Shown piece by piece: positions 37,120-49,403 of a DNA stretch of 64,000 nt. Source of the stretch: Paragordius varius (taxonomy: Eukaryota; Animalia; Nematomorpha); the NCBI GenBank assembly GCA_964247055.1, contig OZ176052.1:12090001-12154000 (forward strand), written 5' to 3'. Within the stretch, counting starts at the first letter, position 1, and each line of letters opens with the position of its first letter. Made by a program: the position numbers and the translations under genes. Below the pieces are notes generated by a model. That model saw nothing but the letters and a program-made list of their open reading frames with translations, had not been told where the DNA came from and ran no database searches.

Positions 37120-37810
37120 TCAACTTGCACAGCTATGTGATACCAGATCGGTATGGTCTAAGCTCTCTCACATGCCCCAGTGTAATCAAACTAAGGGATG
37201 TCCATCATCATCTATATCAATATGATTACCATTATGAAATATAAAAATAAGCTTGCTGCCAATTAGTCGGTGGGTGTTAGAGATATATGGCAATCCAAGA
37301 AAGTCGGGCTTAAACTGAAATTAAAAATCTTGAAATGTATGATTATCCTTGCGTAATATACTGATGCTCGTGGCGTAACACGCACATACATGCCAGAAAG
37401 ATACAAGTTTTCATAAAAGGGTGCCTACGACGCATCAGTTGCTATATACACATACCTTTGAGGAGCTCACAACTGCTTACCTCCCACATCCAAAAAATTT
37501 TAATCCTTTGCATAACACTAACCATTCTTCTAGCTGGCCTGAAAATAGCGGCACACCAACTCCGGCCTAATTCTAGGACCCACTGCGTGAGGCCTAAAAT
37601 GAAATTTGGTAATGCACCCTGGAACGCTTACGATGTGGGAGAATCGTATTGTTCATGTAGCGCATGGGAGTAAGCAATGACAGTTAATTCAGTCGGTGGA
37701 TACTGGAAATGATAGAGCGGTAAAATCAAGAATGTCCTTGTTGAAAAAAAGATAAAGGACGCTAGACCAGAAGAAGGAGGACTAGCCAGGAATGACATCC
37801 CCTATACCAC
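37120..37810 (+). mobile_element. Degenerate LINE fragment, unit 4, 5' part (resumes at 47279 and runs to ~47505)
   Basis: Other units read CCCCTATACCACGAATATCG. Here this is split as ...TATACCAC | insertion | ACCACGAATATCG. Confidence 0.5.
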
Positions 37811-37824
37811 TGTTAAAAGGGTTA

Positions 37825-37972
37825 GAATAATGGAATAGGACCTTGGTTCTATTTTGTGGTTTTCGGAATCCGAGGTAATGATTAAGAGGAACGGACGGGG
37901 GCATCCGTACTGTGGCGCTAGAGGTGAAATTCTTGGACCGCCGCAAGACGAACAACTGCGAAAGTATTTGCC
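37825..37972 (+). pseudogene. 18S rRNA fragment B (central region, roughly nt 810-960)
   Basis: GAATAATGGAATAGGACC...GGGGGCATCCGTACT...AGAGGTGAAATTCTTGGAC...GCGAAAGTATTTGCC are conserved eukaryotic SSU motifs. Confidence 0.93.
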
Positions 37973-38887
37973 TATTAACAGTGGTATTCGTATTTGGGTT
38001 GCTAAGAAGAGGACTACGTAATTGATAATTTGCGTGAGGATTGTATGTTTGAGGTGTCGGAATACTACTCGTAGTCCCATACATTTTACTGGCTTTTTTA
38101 GCCATGGTCGCCAACAATTCTTGGCTATGTTTGTACGTGACACACAATGTATTTATCCACTCTTTGAGGCCAACATCATCTTGCTGAGTTAATATCATCT
38201 TTTCCTTATTTTCATGCTTATAATTTGCACTGTTCACCCTTGATCATCATGAATTCAGTATCAACCGATGCGATTTGGTCCATAAATACCAGTTCAGGTT
38301 TTCCCGACTCCGGGTATAATTCAAGTCGATTCGGGTATAATTTAGCATACCGAGTTTGCCAGGCTGAGGCGAAGGGACCCCCAAGTTTTTTAAGGTAGCC
38401 ATGTATGATACAATCAGATTCCTTTTCATCAGCGTCAAATTTGGTTTTTTGTTTGTTTCGTTTTTTTGCCTCTAATTTATCCGTTTCTTGGTTAACTACA
38501 TCAAACACCGTTTCTGCAATCTCTTCTTGCCATCGTTCTGATATGACTATGGGAAAATTCTTATAAATCTCCTGATCGAATTCCGTTAATTTAATTTCTT
38601 TGGTGTCTTCTTCATCGAATGAGCCAATATCAAAAGCGTCGGCTGCATTGACCTCCCCGCTAGGGGGTATGAGAGGTGGCGGATATCTCCGCATGTAAAC
38701 CATGGTCCAATCGACACCCACAAAAAATAGATGTTCTTTCACTTCTATTGTCCCATATCCGCAACAACCCAATCTAAGTTCTACATCGCGAGCCAAAAGT
38801 CCTTCGAGCACAGACTTAACTTCGGGCGTAAAAGTGTTTGGTAATTCAACATCCATTGTTAATGTCATTCTATCGATTTCGTGTTTA
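37973..38887 (-). pseudogene. GRK2: Intronless GRK2/Gprk1 (beta-adrenergic receptor kinase family) fragment: end of the kinase domain, AGC C-tail and PH domain
   Basis: [84 protein letters not shown] and DDVGLKEW..MAKKASKMYG. One frameshift near 38225; no start or stop; no introns. Confidence 0.93.
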
Positions 38888-39699
38888 GTTGATCCTGCCA
38901 GTAGTCATATGCTTGTCTCAAAGATTAAGCCATGTATGTCTAAGTATAAACTTACTCAAAGTGAAACCGCGAATGGCTCATTAAATCAGTTATGGTTTAT
39001 TAGATTGTCAATGTTACATGGATAACCGTGGTAATTCTAGAGCTAATACATGCTAAAACATCGAATCGTTTGGTTCGATAGCTTATATTAGAACAAAAAC
39101 TAACCGTTTTTGGTGATTCTGGATAACTTTTTGCCGATCGCATGGTCTTTTACCGGCGACGTATCTTTCAAATCTGCCTTATCAACTGTCGATGGTAGGT
39201 TATATGCCTACCATGGTCGTAACGGGTAACGGAGAATCAGGGTTCAATTCCGGAGAGGGAGCCTGAGAAACGGCTACCACATCCAAGGAAGGCAGCAGGC
39301 GCGCAAATTACCCAAGTTCGGAGAGGTAGTGACGATAAATAACAATGCAGGTCTCTTACGAGAACCTGTAATTGGAATGAGATCACTTTAAATCCTTTAA
39401 CGAGGATCTATTGGAGGGCAAGTCTAGTGCCAGCAGCCGCGGTAATTCCAGCTCCAAAAGCGTATATTAAAGTTGTTGCAGTTAAAAAGCTCGTAGTTGG
39501 ATCTCGGGTAACGGGAGGAAGCCCGCTTAGCTGCGATCGTTTCCTTGTCCGACCTACAATCCGTCTTGTCTTAGGTGCTCTTCACCGGGTGTCTTTGGTT
39601 AAACGGAACGTTTACTTTGAAAAAATTAGAGTGCTCAAAGCAGGCTCGATGCCTCGAATATCTGTGCATGGAATAATGGAATAGGACCTCGGTTCTATT
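38888..39699 (+). pseudogene. 18S rRNA fragment A (from about nt 7 of mature 18S to the AATAG/CTATT hairpin)
   Basis: GTTGATCCTGCCAGTAGTCATATGCTTGTCTCAAAGATTAAGCC; GCCAGCAGCCGCGGTAATTCCAGCTCC. Several normally invariant positions are mutated (GCCATGTATG, GGTTCAATTCC, AAGTCTAGTGCC). Confidence 0.95.
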
Positions 39700-39722
39700 C
39701 CATTATTCCATGCACAGATATT

Positions 39723-42700
39723 AAATTATAAAAACTGGTGCCGTCTAGGCAAACCAGCACTAGATTTTCATAACAATAATATTTTCATACATGCATACAA
39801 TAATAATCGTATAAAAACATTAGGTAAATGCAAACTACAGGTTGAATTAGATAAAAGAACGCACATTCTAGAGTGCTTTATTATAAACAACAATTTACCA
39901 TCAATATTTGGAATGGACTGGATAAAACAATTGAATTTGAAATTACCCAGTCATGTTATAATAAATAACTTATCTTCATATGATATATATAACAAATTTA
40001 ACAAGTTATTTTCTGAGGGCCTTGGTTGCTGGAAAGGCGAACCGATTAAAGTGCTTTTAAGTAATAATAATTGTGGTAGAATTTTTCCAAAAGGGTGCCA
40101 CTATCATTACAAAGCAAAGTGGATGATGAGATAAATAGATCGGTAAAACTGGATATAATTGAGCCTGTTGATCCAAAAAAGAAATCGTTTGGTCCAGCCC
40201 TACGGTAAATATTTTAAAACCGAATAAAGAGCTTAGAATATGCGCGGATTTTAAAATATAAATCCACACATAAAACCGCCGCAATACATAATCCTTTGAC
40301 GACCTCATCTCAAAAATTTTCCTTCGGCAAATCTTTCTCAACACTAGATTCGAAAGACGCCTATTTTCAAATTCCAGTAGACCCAGATAGTCAGCACTTA
40401 CTAACAATTTCTACACACAAGGGGTTTTATAAGTATAATTGCCTTTTGGGTTGATTCAACAAATAATGGACGAGTTATTAAAAGATTGCACAGGTACCGC
40501 CGTTTATTTAGATGACGTTATAGTGACAAACAGGCGAAACCGAGACAAAGCACAAGGACAACCTAATAAAGGTATTTACCAAATCGGAGACAATGGGATT
40601 AAAATTGCGCAAAGATAAAATAAATTTTTTTCAACCATCTGTGGAATTCTTGATCATATTATTTCTGAAAATCGCATTAAACCCTCCCCAAATAAAATTA
40701 AAGCCATCCAAAAGTCCCGACCCCGACCAACAAAACCACTCTTAAATCATTTTTGGGTTTACTTTTTCATGCAAAATTCATCCCTTCCCTAAGCATTTTA
40801 ATGGGAGAACTACATAAATTAGCAGGTAACAAACAAAAGTGGTGTTGGACGCTAACGCATGATTCGATATTCAAAAAAGCTAATGACTTGATCTGCCAGA
40901 GTTTTTCCTTGCATCCGTATAATCCCAAACTACCTATAGTCTTGGAAATCGACGCGTCAATGTCAGGATACAGTGCTATTTTATCACATAGAACAACAGC
41001 GGGCAATCGCCCGATCGCCTACACGTCAAAAAAATGCTCTCAAGCTGAAGAAAACTATTCAGTAATTGAACGAGAAGCAAAAGCTATCCTAATAGCGTTA
41101 GAGAAGTTTAAAACCTTTTTGTATGGCAGAAAATTTATAATACAAACGGACCACAAACCTCTAATGAAACTATTTGGGCCTCAAAGAGATCTAAGTAAAA
41201 TTAATAATTGTAAACTAGTACGCTAAATAACTAGAACATTGGTATTCGATTTTAACATAGAATATCACCCTGGTACAGAAAACATAGCTGACTGCCTATC
41301 GAGACTTCCCATTGAAAACCAGGAGGCGATGGCTATTGTGAAAGACGATGAAAGTAGCAATGTTCATTTGATTTGGTCCACGAATTAAATTTAAATAGAG
41401 ATATTATCTATCAAGAGTCGATAAAGGATCCTACGATAGCAAAATTAAAAGTAGCCCTAAGGTCTAATAATTGGACGGACCCTTTGGTCAAGCCTTTCAT
41501 CGCAATGAAAAATGAAATTGAGGATGCATACCGTTTATTATTTGTGGGGGATCGGGTAATAATCCCGAACAAAATTAAGCCAGAGATTTTAAGATACCTG
41601 CATAGTGGCCATCCGGGAATACAAGCCATGAAACTAATAAGCCGTGAAAAGGTTTATTGGCCCGGTTTGAGCCAAGATATCGAAAAATGGGTGTGTAGTT
41701 GCCAAAACTGCCAAAGGCTGCCCCCAAATGTATCCGAAAATCCCACTATCAATGGAACGGGAATACAACCATATGGGAACGGCTCCACCTAGATATCGAT
41801 GGACCCATTGACAATTTATACAGGGTGGTACTAATTGATCATTGGACCCGCTGGGTGGAGGTAAAGACGTTACGCTGTGTGAATACAGGTAATATTCTAA
41901 AGTTTTTAGAAACCTGTATTTGCCGGTATGGGTACCCAAAAGTGGTGGTTACTGATAACGGCTCTTATTTTAAATCGGGGGAGTTTGAGAGAACTTTAGC
42001 TTCCTCTAATATAAAACACGTAACATCAGCTCCCTACCACTCCCGAACAAATGGGTTGGTAGAGAGGGTAATTTACACTCTAAAAAATCATTATTCAATG
42101 TCAACCCCACTTTCCTCAGACCCAGTGCGAAGATTAAACCAAATCTTATGGGCTTACCGAAACACGCGACACAGTTCCACGAAGGAGACCCCCGCGCATT
42201 TGTTTTTAAAAAGAACTATGCAAAGCCCATTTACATGGATGAAAACGAAACCCAACGAATTCATGGATACTCCTGACATTCCATAGGAGTTTGAAAAGGG
42301 GCAAAAGGTATATATCAAGAATGAATTGTGTACTGGCTGGAAGGAGGGACAAATCGTCGACAGAACGGGATGGTCGTACAATGTCAACGACAATGGCAAA
42401 ATTATCCGCAAACATGCTGATCAATTAAAGAATCGCATGGATTGGTCGGCCGAAGGAGAAGACAGGAGAAGTGAGGAAAAGACTAAAAATCTAGATAACC
42501 CGGAAATATCAGGCAGCATTCCTAACTCATCATCCGCAAACTTAAACAACAATGATAATAACCTCCGAAAACATCCCACGGAACATGAAATAAGAACCCC
42601 TGAAAACATCGAGGAGAATCCGGAATCAGAAAGTGCGCCTTCAAGTGAGAATACTCCCGTGCAAACAAGTGACACTTCTCCTACTACGACTCGCCGGTAT

Positions 42701-42750
42701 CCGATTCGATCCCGAAAGCCACCCGACCGATATCAAGCTTATGGAAGAAG
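39723..42750 (+). pseudogene. Degenerate Gypsy pol of element 1 (C-terminal half of protease, RT, RNase H, integrase)
   Basis: WCRLGKPAL..IFGMDWI (protease); LDSKDAYFQI and AVYLDDVIV (RT); LEIDAS..TDHKPL (RNase H); HSGHPG..CQNCQ, LHLDIDGP, VTDNG and NGLVERV (integrase). Many frameshifts. Confidence 0.93.
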
Positions 42751-42753
42751 GTA

Positions 42754-43002
42754 TGTTAAAAGGGTTATTATCATACGCAAATTATCCTTCTCTTTTTAGT
42801 GCAAAATACACTTTTGTCCTTGTTACGTTAAAAATATATATTACCTTGGTTGTGAATGCAAATTATTTTATTTATGCTTATTATCTTTAACAACGTTTAA
42901 ATCAGACAACTTTATCCTTGTGAATGCAATAACCAAATTTCAGAATATATATAAGGAATCATTGTGACACGCAGATCATAATATATTATTCAGTTTTGTT
43001 GT
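42754..43002 (+). repeat. 3' LTR of element 1, first part (remainder 47235-47278; ~293 bp in total)
   Basis: Follows the polypurine tract GGAAGAAGGTA (42743-42753), starts TGTTAAAAGGGTTA, and is split by element 2. Confidence 0.85.
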
Positions 43003-43274
43003 TGTAGTAAATCAAGAAACCGTAAAACAATAAGATTTATTGAGATAAAATGCAAAAACTAAACTACATACAGTTTGCGATGTATATATACTTTTTGTGA
43101 ATACAATATTTACATGTTAAGCCAAGGTAAAATAACTTGTGCAGGTTAAATACAAAATTGATACAATCGTTTAACTCATATATAAAAGGTCATCAAAATG
43201 TATTCAAATCTAATATATAATTTGGTCTTGTCTAAGGTTAACTAACTTGATGTATTCTAATCTATCATATCTCC

Positions 43275-46200
43275 TTATCCAAATCCGAGCCGATCTGGTG
43301 CTTTTCTTTCCCTAAGAGGATATCTCCTTTCAGGTTCTTTCTCAGTTGTTTTTTCCGTTCTTATTTCAACCTGGGTGTCTTTCTCGTTTTCTTTTTCTTT
43401 GCTTGGTTCCTCCCCCACCTCCCGATTATTGGTTGTCATCTCTTCATCTGTTTGGTTTATCGTTACATTATCCTCCTCCTCAACGCCGTTCTCGACTCCG
43501 GTCGGCCGTAATTGATCCGCATGCTTGCGAAGTGTTCGATTTCCATTTTTAACCGTGTACGAGAGTACCCCTGTTCTCTCCAAAATTATACCTTTTCTCC
43601 ACCCTGAATTGATTTCATTCTTTATGTACACTTCTTCGTCCAGTCTAAAAGTTTGATTAGGAATTAGGTCGTCCTCTAATTGTTGTGCGGGTGTTTCCCT
43701 AACCCAAGAGAAGGGGGTATTAATTTGTCTTTTCAGAAATAAATTATACGGGCACTCTTTTGTGGCGCTATGTACGGCGGAGCGATAACCCCATAATACT
43801 TGGTTTATTTTTTTGTCAGGAGTCAGCTTAGAATCCGTTAACGATTTATAGTGTGCTTTTAAGGTGTAAATGACTCGTTCCACCAGCCCATTTGTTCGTG
43901 GATGATAGGGGGCGCTAGTGACGTGTTTGATGTTTGCTCGTTGCAAGGTCTCATTAAAATCTTTCGATGCAAAATATGTTGCATTATCGGTAACGATCAT
44001 TCGGGGAAACCCGTACCTTACACACCAAATTTCCAACCAATGTAGTATGTTTGCCGAATTAACAGTTCTTAGCAATTCGACTTCAACCCATCTGGAGCTA
44101 CTATCGATAGCTACTAACCAATACAACCCATCTATAGGACCAGCAATATCAAGATGTATCCTTTCCCAGATACCCGTATTAAAATTCCATTTGTACGTTG
44201 GATTACTTTTTATGTTACTCCGGTTTAACTGACACCCCATACAAGATCTCACATAATTTTCAATATCTTGGTTTATACCTGGCCAATAAACCCTAGCCTT
44301 GGCAGACTCTTTCATTACATTAGCCCCCGAATGTCCAACATGCAAAAATTTTAACGTTTCATTTCGCAACGCCCTGGGTATAAACAGACGATCGCCCCAA
44401 TACAACAAACCATATGATTCTTGTATTTCGTTTCTTATACTCAATACCGAATTTAGAATTGGAGCTGACCAATCATTATGATGTAGAGCCGATTTTAATG
44501 CCATCAAAAACTCATCCCGTAAAGTATTTTCTTTCATTCGCTGTACGCTTAAGTTGTCAGTTGTTAGAAAGTTGATTTGCCTGGGTTGCTCCTCCACTTC
44601 CTCAGTCGGTTCTTCATACGGTAGACGAGATAACCAATCCGCTAAATTTTCCGAACCATTAATATATTGTATAGTAAAATTATAATCGGCTGTTCTGAGT
44701 ATCCATCTTACTAATCTACTATTGTTAATATTACTTAGATCTCTCTTAAAACCAAACAACTTGATCAGGGGTTTATGATCGGTTAATTATACAAACTTTC
44801 TGCCATACACAAACATTTTAAATTTTTCTAGCGCATATAAAATTGCCCTTGCTTCTTTTTCAATTACAGAGAAATGTCGTTCTGCCTTCGCACATTTTCG
44901 AGACGCAAAAGCTATCGGCCGTTTTCCCTCACTTGTCATATGTGATAAAACTGCTCCGAATCCGTCATTCGATGCATCTGTTTCCAACACTAACGGAAGG
45001 TTCGGGTTAAACGGTATTAGACATAAGGCATTACTCACCAACAGTTTAGCTTTATCAAAAACCATCTCTTCTTTTGTCGACCAACACCATTTCTTAGAAC
45101 CTGTAAGCGCATGTAAGTCCGCGATTGTAGCAGGCAAAGATGGAATAAAACGCGCGTGAAAATTTAACATTCCCAAAAAAGACCGAAGTGATGTTTTATT
45201 GGTAGGTGTAGGACAATTCAAAATTGCTTTTACTTTTTCGTTATCTGGTTTAATTCCTTTGTCTGAAATTATATATCCTAAGTATGACACTGAGGAACGA
45301 GCTAATTGGATTTTATCCTTTTTTAATTTCAAACCCACAGCAGCTAATTTGTTCAACACTTTTTTTAAATTATCCTTATGCTCCATTACCGTTGTTCCAC
45401 TAACAATTACATCATCTAAGTAAACCGCTGTACCTGGACAATCTTTTAATAACTCATCCATAATTTGTTGAAATATCGTGGGTGCACTAGATATTCCAAA
45501 TGGCAGTCTCTTAAATCGAAAAAGGCCTATATGTGAACTAAACGTTGATCAAACGTTGGAATCAGATGATCTACAGGAACCAGACTTGGGTTTAAAGTAA
45601 CTCTAAAATCACCACATATACGAATATCGTTATCATTCTTTTTAACTATCACCAATGGAGTTACCCAGTCAATTCGTGTTTGCGAGGGGTTTATGGACTC
45701 TATAATCCCCAGACTTTCCAGCCTCTTTAATTCACTCTCCACCTTAGACTGAAGCGGAATAGGTACCCTTCTGGTCGCAAATCTTTTGGGGATACTCCCT
45801 TTTTTGAGAAACAACTTAATGGGTGGTCCCGTGTAACACCCCATACCCTCACAAAACAAATCCTTAAATTTATTCAATTCCACGTAATTAACATTTTTTA
45901 CACATACCGGCTCTGGAAATCTGCATTCAAAACTTTTCATCCATGGTAGCCCAAAAATGTTACCCCAATCATCCCTCGTAACCATACATTCCAACTGTTT
46001 GACCATACCATTCCATTTCACATCTACCATACATTGTCCCATCACCTCTACACCTTGCTGGTTGAACCCAACTATTGGACCCGCGGGAGCTAAGGTCGGC
46101 CTCCCAATCTCCATCCACGCTCTTCCCAATCAATAATATTTGAGCTCCGGTATCGTACAACATCCTCACCCAATGGCCATTCAGACTTGCTTGCGTTCGG

Positions 46201-46922
46201 GCTTCATTATTATTATTGTTACCATGAAGTCTATTAACGCGCCGGCAACACCTGCCAAAATGACCACGTCCTTTGCATCGATAACACTCCTTGTTTGAAG
46301 CGGGACACCAGTTGATCGCATGCACGTATCCACATTTTCCACATTTTTTTCTTATCATCATAACTTGCCTATTGTCGGGACCCTGATCAATCAAACAGCT
46401 GTCCGCCTTTTCGTATGCCATTGCCATTTCTACCACCATCTCCAACGTAACCGGTTTCCCATCAACCATTGCATCTGGAAATTTTGTGAACAGATCTATT
46501 TCCAATCTTTTGAGTTGTAACCCTCCAACAAACCCATCTCTGATTCTTAGCATTGCATCTTGCTCAAAGTTGCACCGGGCAGCACATTCCTTTACTCGAA
46601 TCAAAAAATCCATCACTGATTCCGTGGCTTCCCTTCGGAGTTGCGTAAACTGAAACCTGGCTGCAAACGCATTGTATGTCGGAGCAAATATTTTTTTTCC
46701 AGCTGCTACCAAAGCATCCCAGCCCACTTCCTCTAACAGTACAGGATAAAAGAATTTCTTCAACTTTGGAATATGGGATAGACCAATGTTGGCCAATAGT
46801 AAGTTTTTTTTTGTTTCATCATCTTCTGGAATTAATTTCACTTTTAACATTCTCTTTATATAATCTATGTAATCCTCGAAACTCGTTGCTGGATCATAGG
46901 GTTCTAAACTTAATTTCTCCAT
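43275..46922 (-). pseudogene. gag-pol of element 2, disrupted
   Basis: Gag with CCHC-like knuckles (CGKCGYVH..C, CYRCKGRGHFGRCC); protease LYDTGA; RT YLDDV; RNase H LETDAS; integrase HHCC and DDE. Lesions: frameshift at ~46130, RT deletion at ~45540, and in-frame TAA at 44787-44789. Confidence 0.93.
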
Positions 46923-46949
46923 GCGCGAATGTAATGAGGTAAAAAAAAA

Positions 46950-46962
46950 TTCGACCGCGCCA
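46950..46962 (-). promoter_or_regulatory. Primer-binding site of element 2 (TGGCGCGGTCGAA; tRNA-Ser-like by resemblance)
   Basis: Lies 2 nt inside the 5' LTR and starts with TGG, complementary to tRNA CCA. The tRNA assignment is an inference. Confidence 0.75.
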
Positions 46963-47697
46963 AATGTAGTAAATCAAGAAACCGTAAAACAATAAGATTT
47001 ATTGAGATAAAATGCAAAAACTAAACTACATACAGTTTGCGATGTATATATACTTTTTGTGAATACAATATTTACATGTTAAGCCAAGGTAAAATAACTT
47101 GTGCAGGTTAAATACAAAATTGATACAATCGTTTAACTCATATATAAAAGGTCATCAAAATGTATTCAAATCTAATATATAATTTGGTCTTGTCTAAGGT
47201 TAACTAACTTGATGTATTCTAATCTATCAGTTGTTATACTAAATAAATATATATATATATATATCCTTTTTTATATCAACCACGAATATCGATCTAATGC
47301 AGACGACCACAACTAGTGCATGTCATATCAGATTTGACTATAACATTGGATAAATGATACATTGATACACTAATCGTAGAATAAACAACTACTTGTCGCC
47401 ATTAAGAGGTAATGGTATAGAATTTAGGGTATAAAATATATAGGACTAACTCTATATACTTAATGTGCTGTAGGATATCAAGTTAGAATATAAAAATAAA
47501 TAATGTAACCCAATAATTTACTCTTTCCCACAAAATTGCAATAACAATTCATGCATACCTTATATTTTTAACGTATCATTATATCCCTCAAGGTACACCC
47601 AACGAGACGATAAAATGAAAAATGAAGGTTTAAAAAATATTAAGTTTTTATAAAAAATATAGACATTCGTGCAATATCTTTATTATTTTAACTACTG

Positions 47698-48794
47698 CAC
47701 CAGATGTATATAATACAAGTTTAACTAATATAAGAAGACAAAAAAGTACTCAACCGATTAATTTGACGATGCCATTTGACCCATCACACATCAGACGACA
47801 CAGACAAAGAAAATGAGTCTGTCAAAAGCGAGCTCTCATGTTCATTATTCAGTAATTAAGTCGAACTGTGTGCCTAAAAAACGATTGCGGGATGCATTGC
47901 TTTTATACGTCAGAAGAAAAAGGATGTTAAAAGTCATTGTTCCATCGATTAAATTGTGTAACATAGTTTAAATATTTAAATGATTTTTATATGAAAGAGA
48001 GTGGGTACCATGGCAGACCACACAGCCACGAAGACGAAGTGCAAGACTAATTGGATAATGGCTCAACTCAAACTCATTTCATAAGTGTATCACAACCATT
48101 CGATGTTTACAAAATGAGAAGAATCAATAAACTCAGTAAATACTGACCAGACAATTCGCATGGCAATTATAAAATCACCAATGGACTTGAGATATCCTGC
48201 TTTCGGAAGATGGTGAGAAATAGTTTTTGTAAATTGAGAAAGAGAAATGCTAAGTTGCCAACCGGTCAATCAACATCAAAGTTAATCACTTCAGTAAAAC
48301 CATGAATGTGTCTGGTGGACCAAAGCGCTGTTGTGCATTATGAGCCCCGAAACCGTTAATACAAAACTCTATCTGCAGAAAATGATTAATTAAATTAATG
48401 CATTAAACGACCAAAAATAGGCCAGAAGACAGGACGATAAATTTCGCCACATAACAAGGCTTCGTCTTACATGGCAAAACCAGTATATACACCTTATAAT
48501 CGCTTTGAGAAAATTCTTTTGCATTTGGAAAACTCTCCTGACCTGGATATCATTATTCCCTCCTCGCATCAACATGGTATATGCTTGCAGAAAGCAGATT
48601 AACAATTTGGAAAACGTTGGAAAATGGCTTGACAGATGGTTTACCACAAAAACATTCAGTTTTTTAGCATTGCATTCATAACTTGAGAGCTAAGGAAATT
48701 TTTGGTGGACAATATCTCGAATGAAATAAATTTGATTTCCCTGTATAATTATTACTTTTTTTAGCAACCGTAATTATTTATGACTACACTGGTA
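47698..48794 (+). mobile_element. Mariner fossil, unit 4
   Basis: Collinear with 1784-2895. The downstream hAT site is empty (AATCTAGAGAATT). Confidence 0.85.
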
Positions 48795-49182
48795 TCAACG
48801 CTTGTACTAGGGAAAATAATCTAGAGAATTAATTTATTTGACCCTCTAAAATAATTTTATATTTACCAATTTTATTAAAGATGTCGGAGAGAGACTTCTA
48901 AGACCTATACATATTTAAAACAAACAAGTTTTACAAAAATTCCACATAATACAACATTTAATGTATGCTATTCAAATATACATAATTAGAAAAACAATAA
49001 GAAATTTATAAAAAAGATAATATACCACAGCCCAGCCCAAAAAACATTTTGAATGAATAAAAATGTTTTCCTTATCAAACCATTTTCCCAGTCAATCTAA
49101 ACGATTATCCAGTCAATGGAATTTTTTTGCAATCAACAAAAACGGTTTGGTTTTCATAAAAAATATTAAAGCAAGTTTTAAC

Positions 49183-49403
49183 ATTTGGATACAACACATT
49201 CATTTCAGTCCTTCGATTCAAATCGAGGAAGTTGGATACCTCAGGCTTGTTTAAAATATACTTCAAAAACTATGGAAGGAATTGAAACAATGGCAAAGGT
49301 TTGCCCTTATGTAACATTAATGAACCTAAATATAAAAAAAATCATTCAAAAATATTTGATATTACATATTTTAGAATAAAACCCAAAAGTAATTATTTAG
49401 TCT
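49183..49403. mobile_element. Truncated TTAA MITE at the end of the tandem array
   Basis: TTAA|CATTTGGATACAACAC...; homology to 15646-16180 stops near 49403. Confidence 0.65.

Follow-up and report, generated by a model that had tools for sequence, protein, structure and literature searches.

A Gypsy-type mosaic insertion in Paragordius varius with 18S rRNA and antisense mRNA fragments and a hairpin-templated seam

LTR elements are known to duplicate genes and shuffle exons by way of the chimeric retrocopies that they make. LTR-mediated examples have been described for Ty1 in yeast, for Bs1 in maize, in Drosophila and in vertebrates (Tan et al. 2016, PMC5131818). Their junctions show a median microsimilarity of about 6 nt, and some of them carry 2-26 bp of extra sequence (PMC5131818). 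The locus described here keeps base-exact seams that bear on the question of how non-homologous and antisense pieces get joined.

Priming by RNA, self-priming and end-to-end jumping are known activities of reverse transcriptases (RT). Among the Gypsy-group elements, Tf1 and sushi are self-priming: the folded-back 3' end of the RNA primes normal reverse transcription. TAR-dependent self-priming was reportedly described by Guo et al. in 1997. This reaction, in which the minus-strand strong-stop DNA of retroviruses primes itself, is an in vitro dead end; nucleocapsid suppresses it, and it is not observed in particles (PMC6088434). For LINE-1, chimeras with 28S and 5S rRNA partners are documented, and self-priming by RNA (tRNA) fragments has been proposed (bioRxiv 10.1101/2025.02.02.635956); 5' inversions of LINE-1 arise by twin priming (PMC2912911).

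The window, a stretch of 64,000 nucleotides of the nematomorph P. varius, is situated on contig C3 of a 110-Mb assembly; the rDNA array is found on contig C2. A 9.5-kb insert occupies positions 37811-47278 of the window. It starts with TG, ends with CA and has ACCAC on both flanks, and three paralogous units, which represent empty sites, read CCCCTATACCACGAATATCG without interruption. Ends of this type, together with a 5-bp duplication, point to an integrase-type insertion. The insert and its flanks are composed as follows (window positions and strand).

37806-37810, no strand: target-site duplication ACCAC, left copy, recognized from the empty sites in three paralogous tandem units
37811-37824, plus: stub of the Gypsy-A LTR (U3 nt 1-14, TG start); the same 14 nt open the 3' LTR at 42754 and the intact copy L041
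37825-37972, plus: 18S piece b, nt 797-945, 98% identical to native 18S
37973-38005, plus: 33-nt patchwork filler with three rival sources
38006-38887, minus: GRK2-like mRNA fragment with 7 introns removed, in eight exon pieces, antisense to the element
38888-39699, plus: 18S piece a, nt 7-825, with 10 substitutions and 2 deletions against native 18S and no upstream external spacer
39723-42753, plus: body of Gypsy-A, beginning in mid-protease and covering RT, RNase H and integrase, with degraded frames, colinear with L041 from 1220 and 93% identical
42754-43002, plus: Gypsy-A 3' LTR, first part
43003-47229, minus: nested, younger Gypsy-B, flanked by its own GTTGT duplication and with no difference between its 265-bp LTRs (100% identity)
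47235-47278, plus: Gypsy-A 3' LTR, last part, CA end
47279-47283, no strand: target-site duplication ACCAC, right copy

The natural intact copy L041 (4627 bp, identical 305-bp LTRs) was used for coordinates only; neither a consensus nor a repaired element was built. Its primer-binding site begins with TGG, 2 nt past the LTR, and looks tRNA-type. Measured on this copy, the interior of the element in the window was replaced and not interrupted: positions 15-1219 have given way to 1898 nt of foreign sequence. Element sequence is thus present on both sides, as a 14-nt U3 stub on the left and a full 3' LTR on the right, within a 5-bp duplication. The Gypsy part, about 93% identical to its relatives, begins at NYKNWCRLGKP, 6 codons past the protease motif DTGA of the intact copy (1220 of 4627). 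The jump into a Gypsy protease that the initial annotation had described is correctly placed, as the sequence runs colinear with about 25 family copies from 39722/39723 onward.

The left end consists of exactly the 14 terminal bases of the LTR, which is what selection for an integrase-competent end predicts; a later internal deletion leaving the same end would be a coincidence of roughly 1%. A terminus of 14 nt can hence suffice for clean insertion. The nested Gypsy-B is 4.2 kb long, young and apparently complete; its frames for gag, RT-RNase H and integrase are split into pieces of 200-494 aa.

Both kinds of captured sequence were copied from RNA. Piece a opens at nt 7 of the mature 18S (the native gene starts with TACCTG, followed by GTTGATCC), and this start without any spacer indicates an RNA template. 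Piece b has three changes compared to the native sequence, and the two pieces together have drifted by about 1.5%. Because it overlaps piece a by 29 nt, piece b must derive from another template molecule or from a repeated pass. All 12 changes of piece a fall within roughly its first 550 nt; the remaining 270 nt or so match native 18S exactly. Under a uniform rate, such an uneven spread has a P of about 0.02; it may reflect chance or a conversion patch.

The 882 nt of the mRNA fragment are the reverse complement of a spliced transcript. They match eight exons of a gene at C2:13272194-13276913 with 90-97% identity, and the removal of the seven introns shows that this piece, too, was copied from RNA. 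The fragment encodes the C-lobe of the kinase, the linker and the PH domain and continues into the 3'UTR; the encoded protein has 74% amino-acid identity to arthropod G protein-coupled receptor kinases. It begins within an exon of the kinase domain and is hence an internal fragment. The seam between GRK and 18S occurs once in the genome. A junction of two cDNAs at the 5' ends of their RNAs was considered for it and rejected, because the GRK piece starts mid-exon in the kinase domain. The GRK fragment is more diverged from the sole matching gene (90-97%) than the 18S pieces are from native 18S (about 98.5%); its parent may be another allele or a paralogue missing from the assembly.

At its 3' end, piece a runs into a fold-back. 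The initial annotation treated this junction alone, though it is one of six seams in the mosaic. Three features make it up.

39657-39679, plus: snap-back template (18S nt 783-805), defined by arm complementarity and the native 18S alignment
39680-39699, plus: native 18S hairpin, nt 806-825, source of the paired 3' end, with a predicted 8-bp stem
39700-39722, plus: 23-nt non-native snap-back extension, an exact mirror of 39657-39679 that is missing from native rDNA

The arms 39657-39684 and 39695-39722 are perfect reverse complements, as had been reported (28/28). Inward pairing extends them to 32 nt, with one G.T pair and a loop of 2 nt. For the 83-nt fold-back stretch, a folding energy of -56.1 kcal/mol is predicted (z = -13.2), and none of 200 shuffles was as stable. 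Searched as a miRNA precursor, the fold-back reached best family scores of 28-40 bits, against gathering thresholds of 68-109; these matches were set aside, as any perfect hairpin would score likewise and all are far under threshold.

Aligned to the native rDNA unit on C2, the 18S match ends at 39699 (nt 825), the 3' base of the native hairpin. Past nt 825, native 18S reads TTTGTTGG; the window reads the mirror arm instead. These next 23 nt (39700-39722) were described as a copy of the upstream arm, and they are indeed the exact reverse complement of 39657-39679, or 18S nt 783-805 (23/23). The alignment to the species' own 18S also bears out that the extension is non-native: the native rDNA is without the long inverted arm, and the extension is found in 0 of about 120 copies. 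The exact junction word occurs once in the 110-Mb genome. About 123 rDNA matches to it are ordinary antisense 18S, with one mismatch each.

Only the inner AATAG/CTATT pairing had been taken as native. The native stem is the inner one, but its helix is 8 bp long (AATAGGAC/GTTCTATT, with a 4-nt loop) and not 5. The predicted energy of this 8-bp stem is -7.8 kcal/mol as RNA and -2.0 as DNA; its G.U pair makes it marginal as DNA. In the Rfam 18S model, the variable region that holds the helix has no annotated pairs; the complementarity is retained in the Rfam consensus sequence. That the helix is native is suggested by the folding prediction, by this complementarity and by 18S structure maps, which we take to show a helix at nt 806-825.

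As expected from self-priming, the extension sets in where the 3' end was already paired in a hairpin, and it complements the bases located 5' of that hairpin without a mismatch. It is likewise a short inverted templated insertion at a junction (23 nt), as expected from Pol theta or synthesis-dependent microhomology-mediated end joining (SD-MMEJ). At its end, the patch has a single nucleotide (T) in common with the Gypsy sequence. Microhomology is equally scarce, 0-1 nt, at the U3/18S and GRK/18S seams; the fourth seam is obscured by the filler.

Strand-switched copies occur elsewhere in the Gypsy-A family. In L043 (C5:10062500-10070500) and L045 (C5:11112500-11121500), antisense internal segments replace the 5' part and are fused to a sense body. 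In L044 (C1:9456500-9464000), U3 nt 1-45 are followed by antisense 1684-1140 and then by sense sequence from 1690, with 8 nt in common at the seam between U3 and the antisense segment. The right end of L044 is an inverted U3 beside a 5-bp duplication, GCCGT; the position of this inverted terminus next to the duplication indicates that the strand-switched end predates insertion. Two independent Gypsy-A copies have the same sense-strand breakpoint, 1690, just past the purine-rich tract AAAAAAGACTAGA, which is possibly an internal plus-strand priming site.

What the sequence of the fold-back requires is an 18S-sense strand with a free 3'-OH at nt 825, paired in the native helix, and 23 nt templated on nt 805-783. 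The geometry deduced in the initial annotation (18S-sense 3' end at nt 825, 23 nt added on itself, then Gypsy plus strand) is therefore the right one. By itself, the seam fits an RNA or a DNA 3' end, and RT or a host polymerase of the Pol theta type, alike. We tentatively favor, with a probability of about 0.4, an aberrant pre-integration cDNA made by the Gypsy RT, in which rRNA fragments served as primers and a hairpin-primed snap-back left the scar. The nt-7 start of the 18S, the spliced GRK, the integrase-type ends and the strand-switched sister copies make such an RNA-level, pre-integration origin plausible. We infer the order of events, the RNA nature of the primer and the use of the element's own polymerase.

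An rRNA primer is favored by the polarity of the 18S pieces: 18S-sense is the rRNA's own polarity, and DNA would need a prior cDNA and a second strand. The helix, stable as RNA and marginal as DNA, argues in the same direction. Moreover, both segments with first-strand polarity, the antisense GRK and the 23-nt patch, are located directly 3' of 18S-sense sequence, which points to 18S fragments as their primers. A more specific version, which we hold as possible but doubtful, is that packaged mature 18S fragments primed the Gypsy RT in vivo, once on themselves and once on host mRNA, and that the products were stitched together by the minus strand.

In the favored pathway, a Gypsy virus-like particle would assemble cDNA from its own RNA, co-packaged 18S rRNA and host mRNA. 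A mature 18S fragment ending at nt 825 would fold on the helix of nt 806-825, and the element RT would add 23 nt to its 3'-OH, with nt 805 down to 783 as the template. The snap-back product could then switch onto Gypsy minus-strand cDNA at mid-protease. Equally possible, a minus-strand cDNA stalled at broken genomic RNA could jump to the RNA of piece a with its additional 23 nt; after this jump, the minus strand would copy back to the 5' end of the 18S. The next jump would reach the 3' end of a molecule composed of the RNA of piece b and antisense GRK cDNA. In a last jump, a 14-nt nascent plus strand would give the U3 terminus, extension of this 14-mer would complete the plus strand, and integrase would insert the finished mosaic.

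Several points speak against this pathway. It needs four or five non-homologous switches within one cDNA, and the 0-1 nt of microhomology at three seams is low compared to the roughly 6 nt usual in published LTR chimeras. We know of no 18S cleavage at nt 825. The filler, furthermore, contains a perfect 13-nt inverted copy of the junction between host and U3. The term 'non-canonical primer', used for the rRNA in the initial annotation, goes too far in any case: the locus is a one-off dead product, with no 5' LTR, primer-binding site, gag or second copy.

Positions 37975-37987 of the filler (37973-38005) are the reverse complement of the left host/U3 junction, 37804-37816 (13/13, or 17 nt with one mismatch), and an inverted match of 13 nt was reached by only 1 of 5000 shuffles (P about 2e-4). 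If not due to chance, this copy of a junction located 160 nt upstream, which is present only after integration, implies that some synthesis took place after joining the chromosome; a real patch of this kind would place a host polymerase prone to snap-back at the site. Two other sources compete with it. The filler also chains colinearly to 18S patches (nt 958-965, 1045-1053, 1090-1100 and 1123-1125), with a P of about 5e-4 against shuffles and about 3.5e-3 against random targets, and its first 9 nt are the GRK 3'UTR directly beside the end of the fragment. The GRK 9-mer and an 18S 9-mer together cover the whole 13-mer. Any of the three, the host/U3 junction, the 18S patches or the 9-mer of the GRK 3'UTR, may have given rise to the filler. 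Its 24-nt core was not found elsewhere in the genome at up to 3 mismatches, and the search for a remnant of a primer-binding site in it gave nothing convincing. An annealing of 18S nt 945 to the GRK 3'UTR by 7 nt of microhomology was considered and dropped, as the filler has 18S patches and the rival match to the integration junction.

Host repair is the most probable of the alternatives, although we consider it rather unlikely. A DNA 3' end reading ...CTATT would have snapped back on a short inverted repeat, been extended by 23 nt by a Pol theta-type polymerase and been joined to a Gypsy end; the 3' end would belong to an 18S cDNA captured at a break in the integrated element, or would arise during gap repair of an incomplete integrated cDNA. 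A 23-nt inverted templated insertion with 1 nt of microhomology is a signature of snap-back repair (PMC2943611, PMC4912351), the other junctions lack microhomology as in end joining, and the inverted patch in the filler fits such an origin. However, three RNA-derived fragments of 150-880 nt would have to be captured in one event, with a breakpoint 14 nt into the LTR, and the hairpin is weak as DNA (-2.0 kcal/mol). The 13-mer, moreover, is fully covered by the two 9-mers, and the sister copies had strand-switched ends before integration.

A pre-integration reaction of the element's RT primed by DNA instead of RNA is unlikely as well, and less well placed than host repair. A plus-strand 18S copy would have run off at nt 825, snapped back and switched to Gypsy minus-strand DNA. 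The resulting anatomy is the same as with an RNA primer, and one plus strand, primed at the polypurine tract (PPT) and starting from U3 nt 1, could thread the entire mosaic; retroviral RT is also able to self-prime DNA hairpins in vitro (PMC6088434). The polarity pattern is nevertheless explained less parsimoniously, as two independently primed 18S cDNAs and second-strand synthesis are needed, and the DNA hairpin is marginal.

A later mutation in place is very improbable. Here, a replication strand switch in a quasi-palindrome would have lengthened an existing junction between 18S and Gypsy to a perfect palindrome. Quasi-palindrome correction is an established mutational mechanism, and the arms are still perfect despite 12 changes elsewhere in the 18S piece. 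Yet the nearest 270 nt of 18S are likewise unchanged, so the perfect arms are not special, and the start of the patch coincides exactly with both the junction and the base of the native helix. Finally, an assembly or library artefact from a chimeric or fold-back read is hardly credible: library chemistry can create palindromic junctions, but the 18S pieces differ by about 1.5% from all native copies (two deletions included), the target duplication is clean, a younger element is nested in the LTR, and the 23-nt patch is unlike the form of long-read fold-back chimeras.

Compared to the described systems, the locus is a variant of LTR-mediated chimeric retroposition that stands apart by its rRNA donors and its hairpin-templated seam. 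A literature search that was not aimed at this question, and which speaks only weakly for absence, turned up no published rRNA-Gypsy chimera with a hairpin-templated seam. Three of the four defining features of an LTR-mediated chimeric retrocopy are present, microsimilarity being the exception. As in the known retrocopies, the interior was replaced by sequence derived from host RNA, the element is found on both sides, more than one donor RNA contributed, the insertion is of the retrotransposon type, and some junctions carry extra bases. The differences are also clear: mature 18S was a donor twice, the mRNA is antisense, the 5' LTR is cut to 14 nt, microsimilarity is nearly absent, and one junction carries a hairpin-templated 23-nt mirror copy.

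On the favored reading, the locus shares with TAR-dependent self-priming a 3' end that pairs within a native hairpin and is lengthened by RT along its own strand to give a dead-end product. The TAR hairpin is viral DNA, whereas here a cellular rRNA supplied the hairpin, RNA was probably the primer, and the product has survived as an integrated copy. In Tf1, as in the pathway proposed here, reverse transcription in a particle of the Ty3/Gypsy type starts from the 3' end of an RNA that has folded back; for Tf1 this is its own normal primer, whereas the primer-binding site of the present family looks tRNA-type, and priming by rRNA would be accidental. Template switching by RT, with rRNA or snRNA fragments joined to the element and some partners antisense, also links the locus to LINE-1 chimeras. 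LINE-1 is, however, a non-LTR element that uses target-primed reverse transcription, in contrast to the integrase-type insertion of a Gypsy LTR element. Snap-back by SD-MMEJ or Pol theta likewise leaves a short, inverted insertion across a junction, templated after priming from an inverted repeat close by (PMC2943611, PMC4912351). Such repair takes place where a chromosome is broken and uses loops and primers a few nt long, whereas here the flanks are RNA-derived and located inside an element with integrase-type ends.

The mosaic is a unique, old locus, a dead single-copy element with no sign of function. Its value is that of a mechanistic fossil and not of a working part or a new system. From the hairpin-templated patch, both the polarity of one intermediate and the position of its 3' end can be read, and this allows a concrete model to be offered, in which rRNA fragments act as accidental primers and end-to-end jumps follow. 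If true, the locus would document a natural case of reverse transcription primed by rRNA and show how an LTR element can shuffle host sequence of either orientation.

When other orphan 18S pieces were sought across the genome, the about 120 rDNA copies swamped the search. A second orphan fragment is nonetheless present at C4:8076974-8077157 (L050 974-1157), covering nt about 475-659 with 87% identity, at about 0.7 kb from exons matching the FANCI domain. No snap-back seam is found at this fragment. It is positioned between AT-rich inverted repeats of about 75 nt, with an outer 23-nt inverted pair at 782-804 and 1311-1333 (L050), and looks like a fold-back or MITE-like DNA element rather than an RT seam. 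The rDNA array itself (C2, about 1.81-2.96 Mb) holds more than 120 units. Their orientation alternates from block to block, and they are spaced about 8 to 26 kb apart. This layout is unusual and partly palindromic.

In a self-comparison of the window, four tandem copies of an AT-rich unit of 9-15 kb, 84-97% identical, start near 1, 12208, 27597 and 36336 and span positions 1-37800 and 47284-49400 of the window. The copies differ by other insertions, and only the fourth carries the mosaic.
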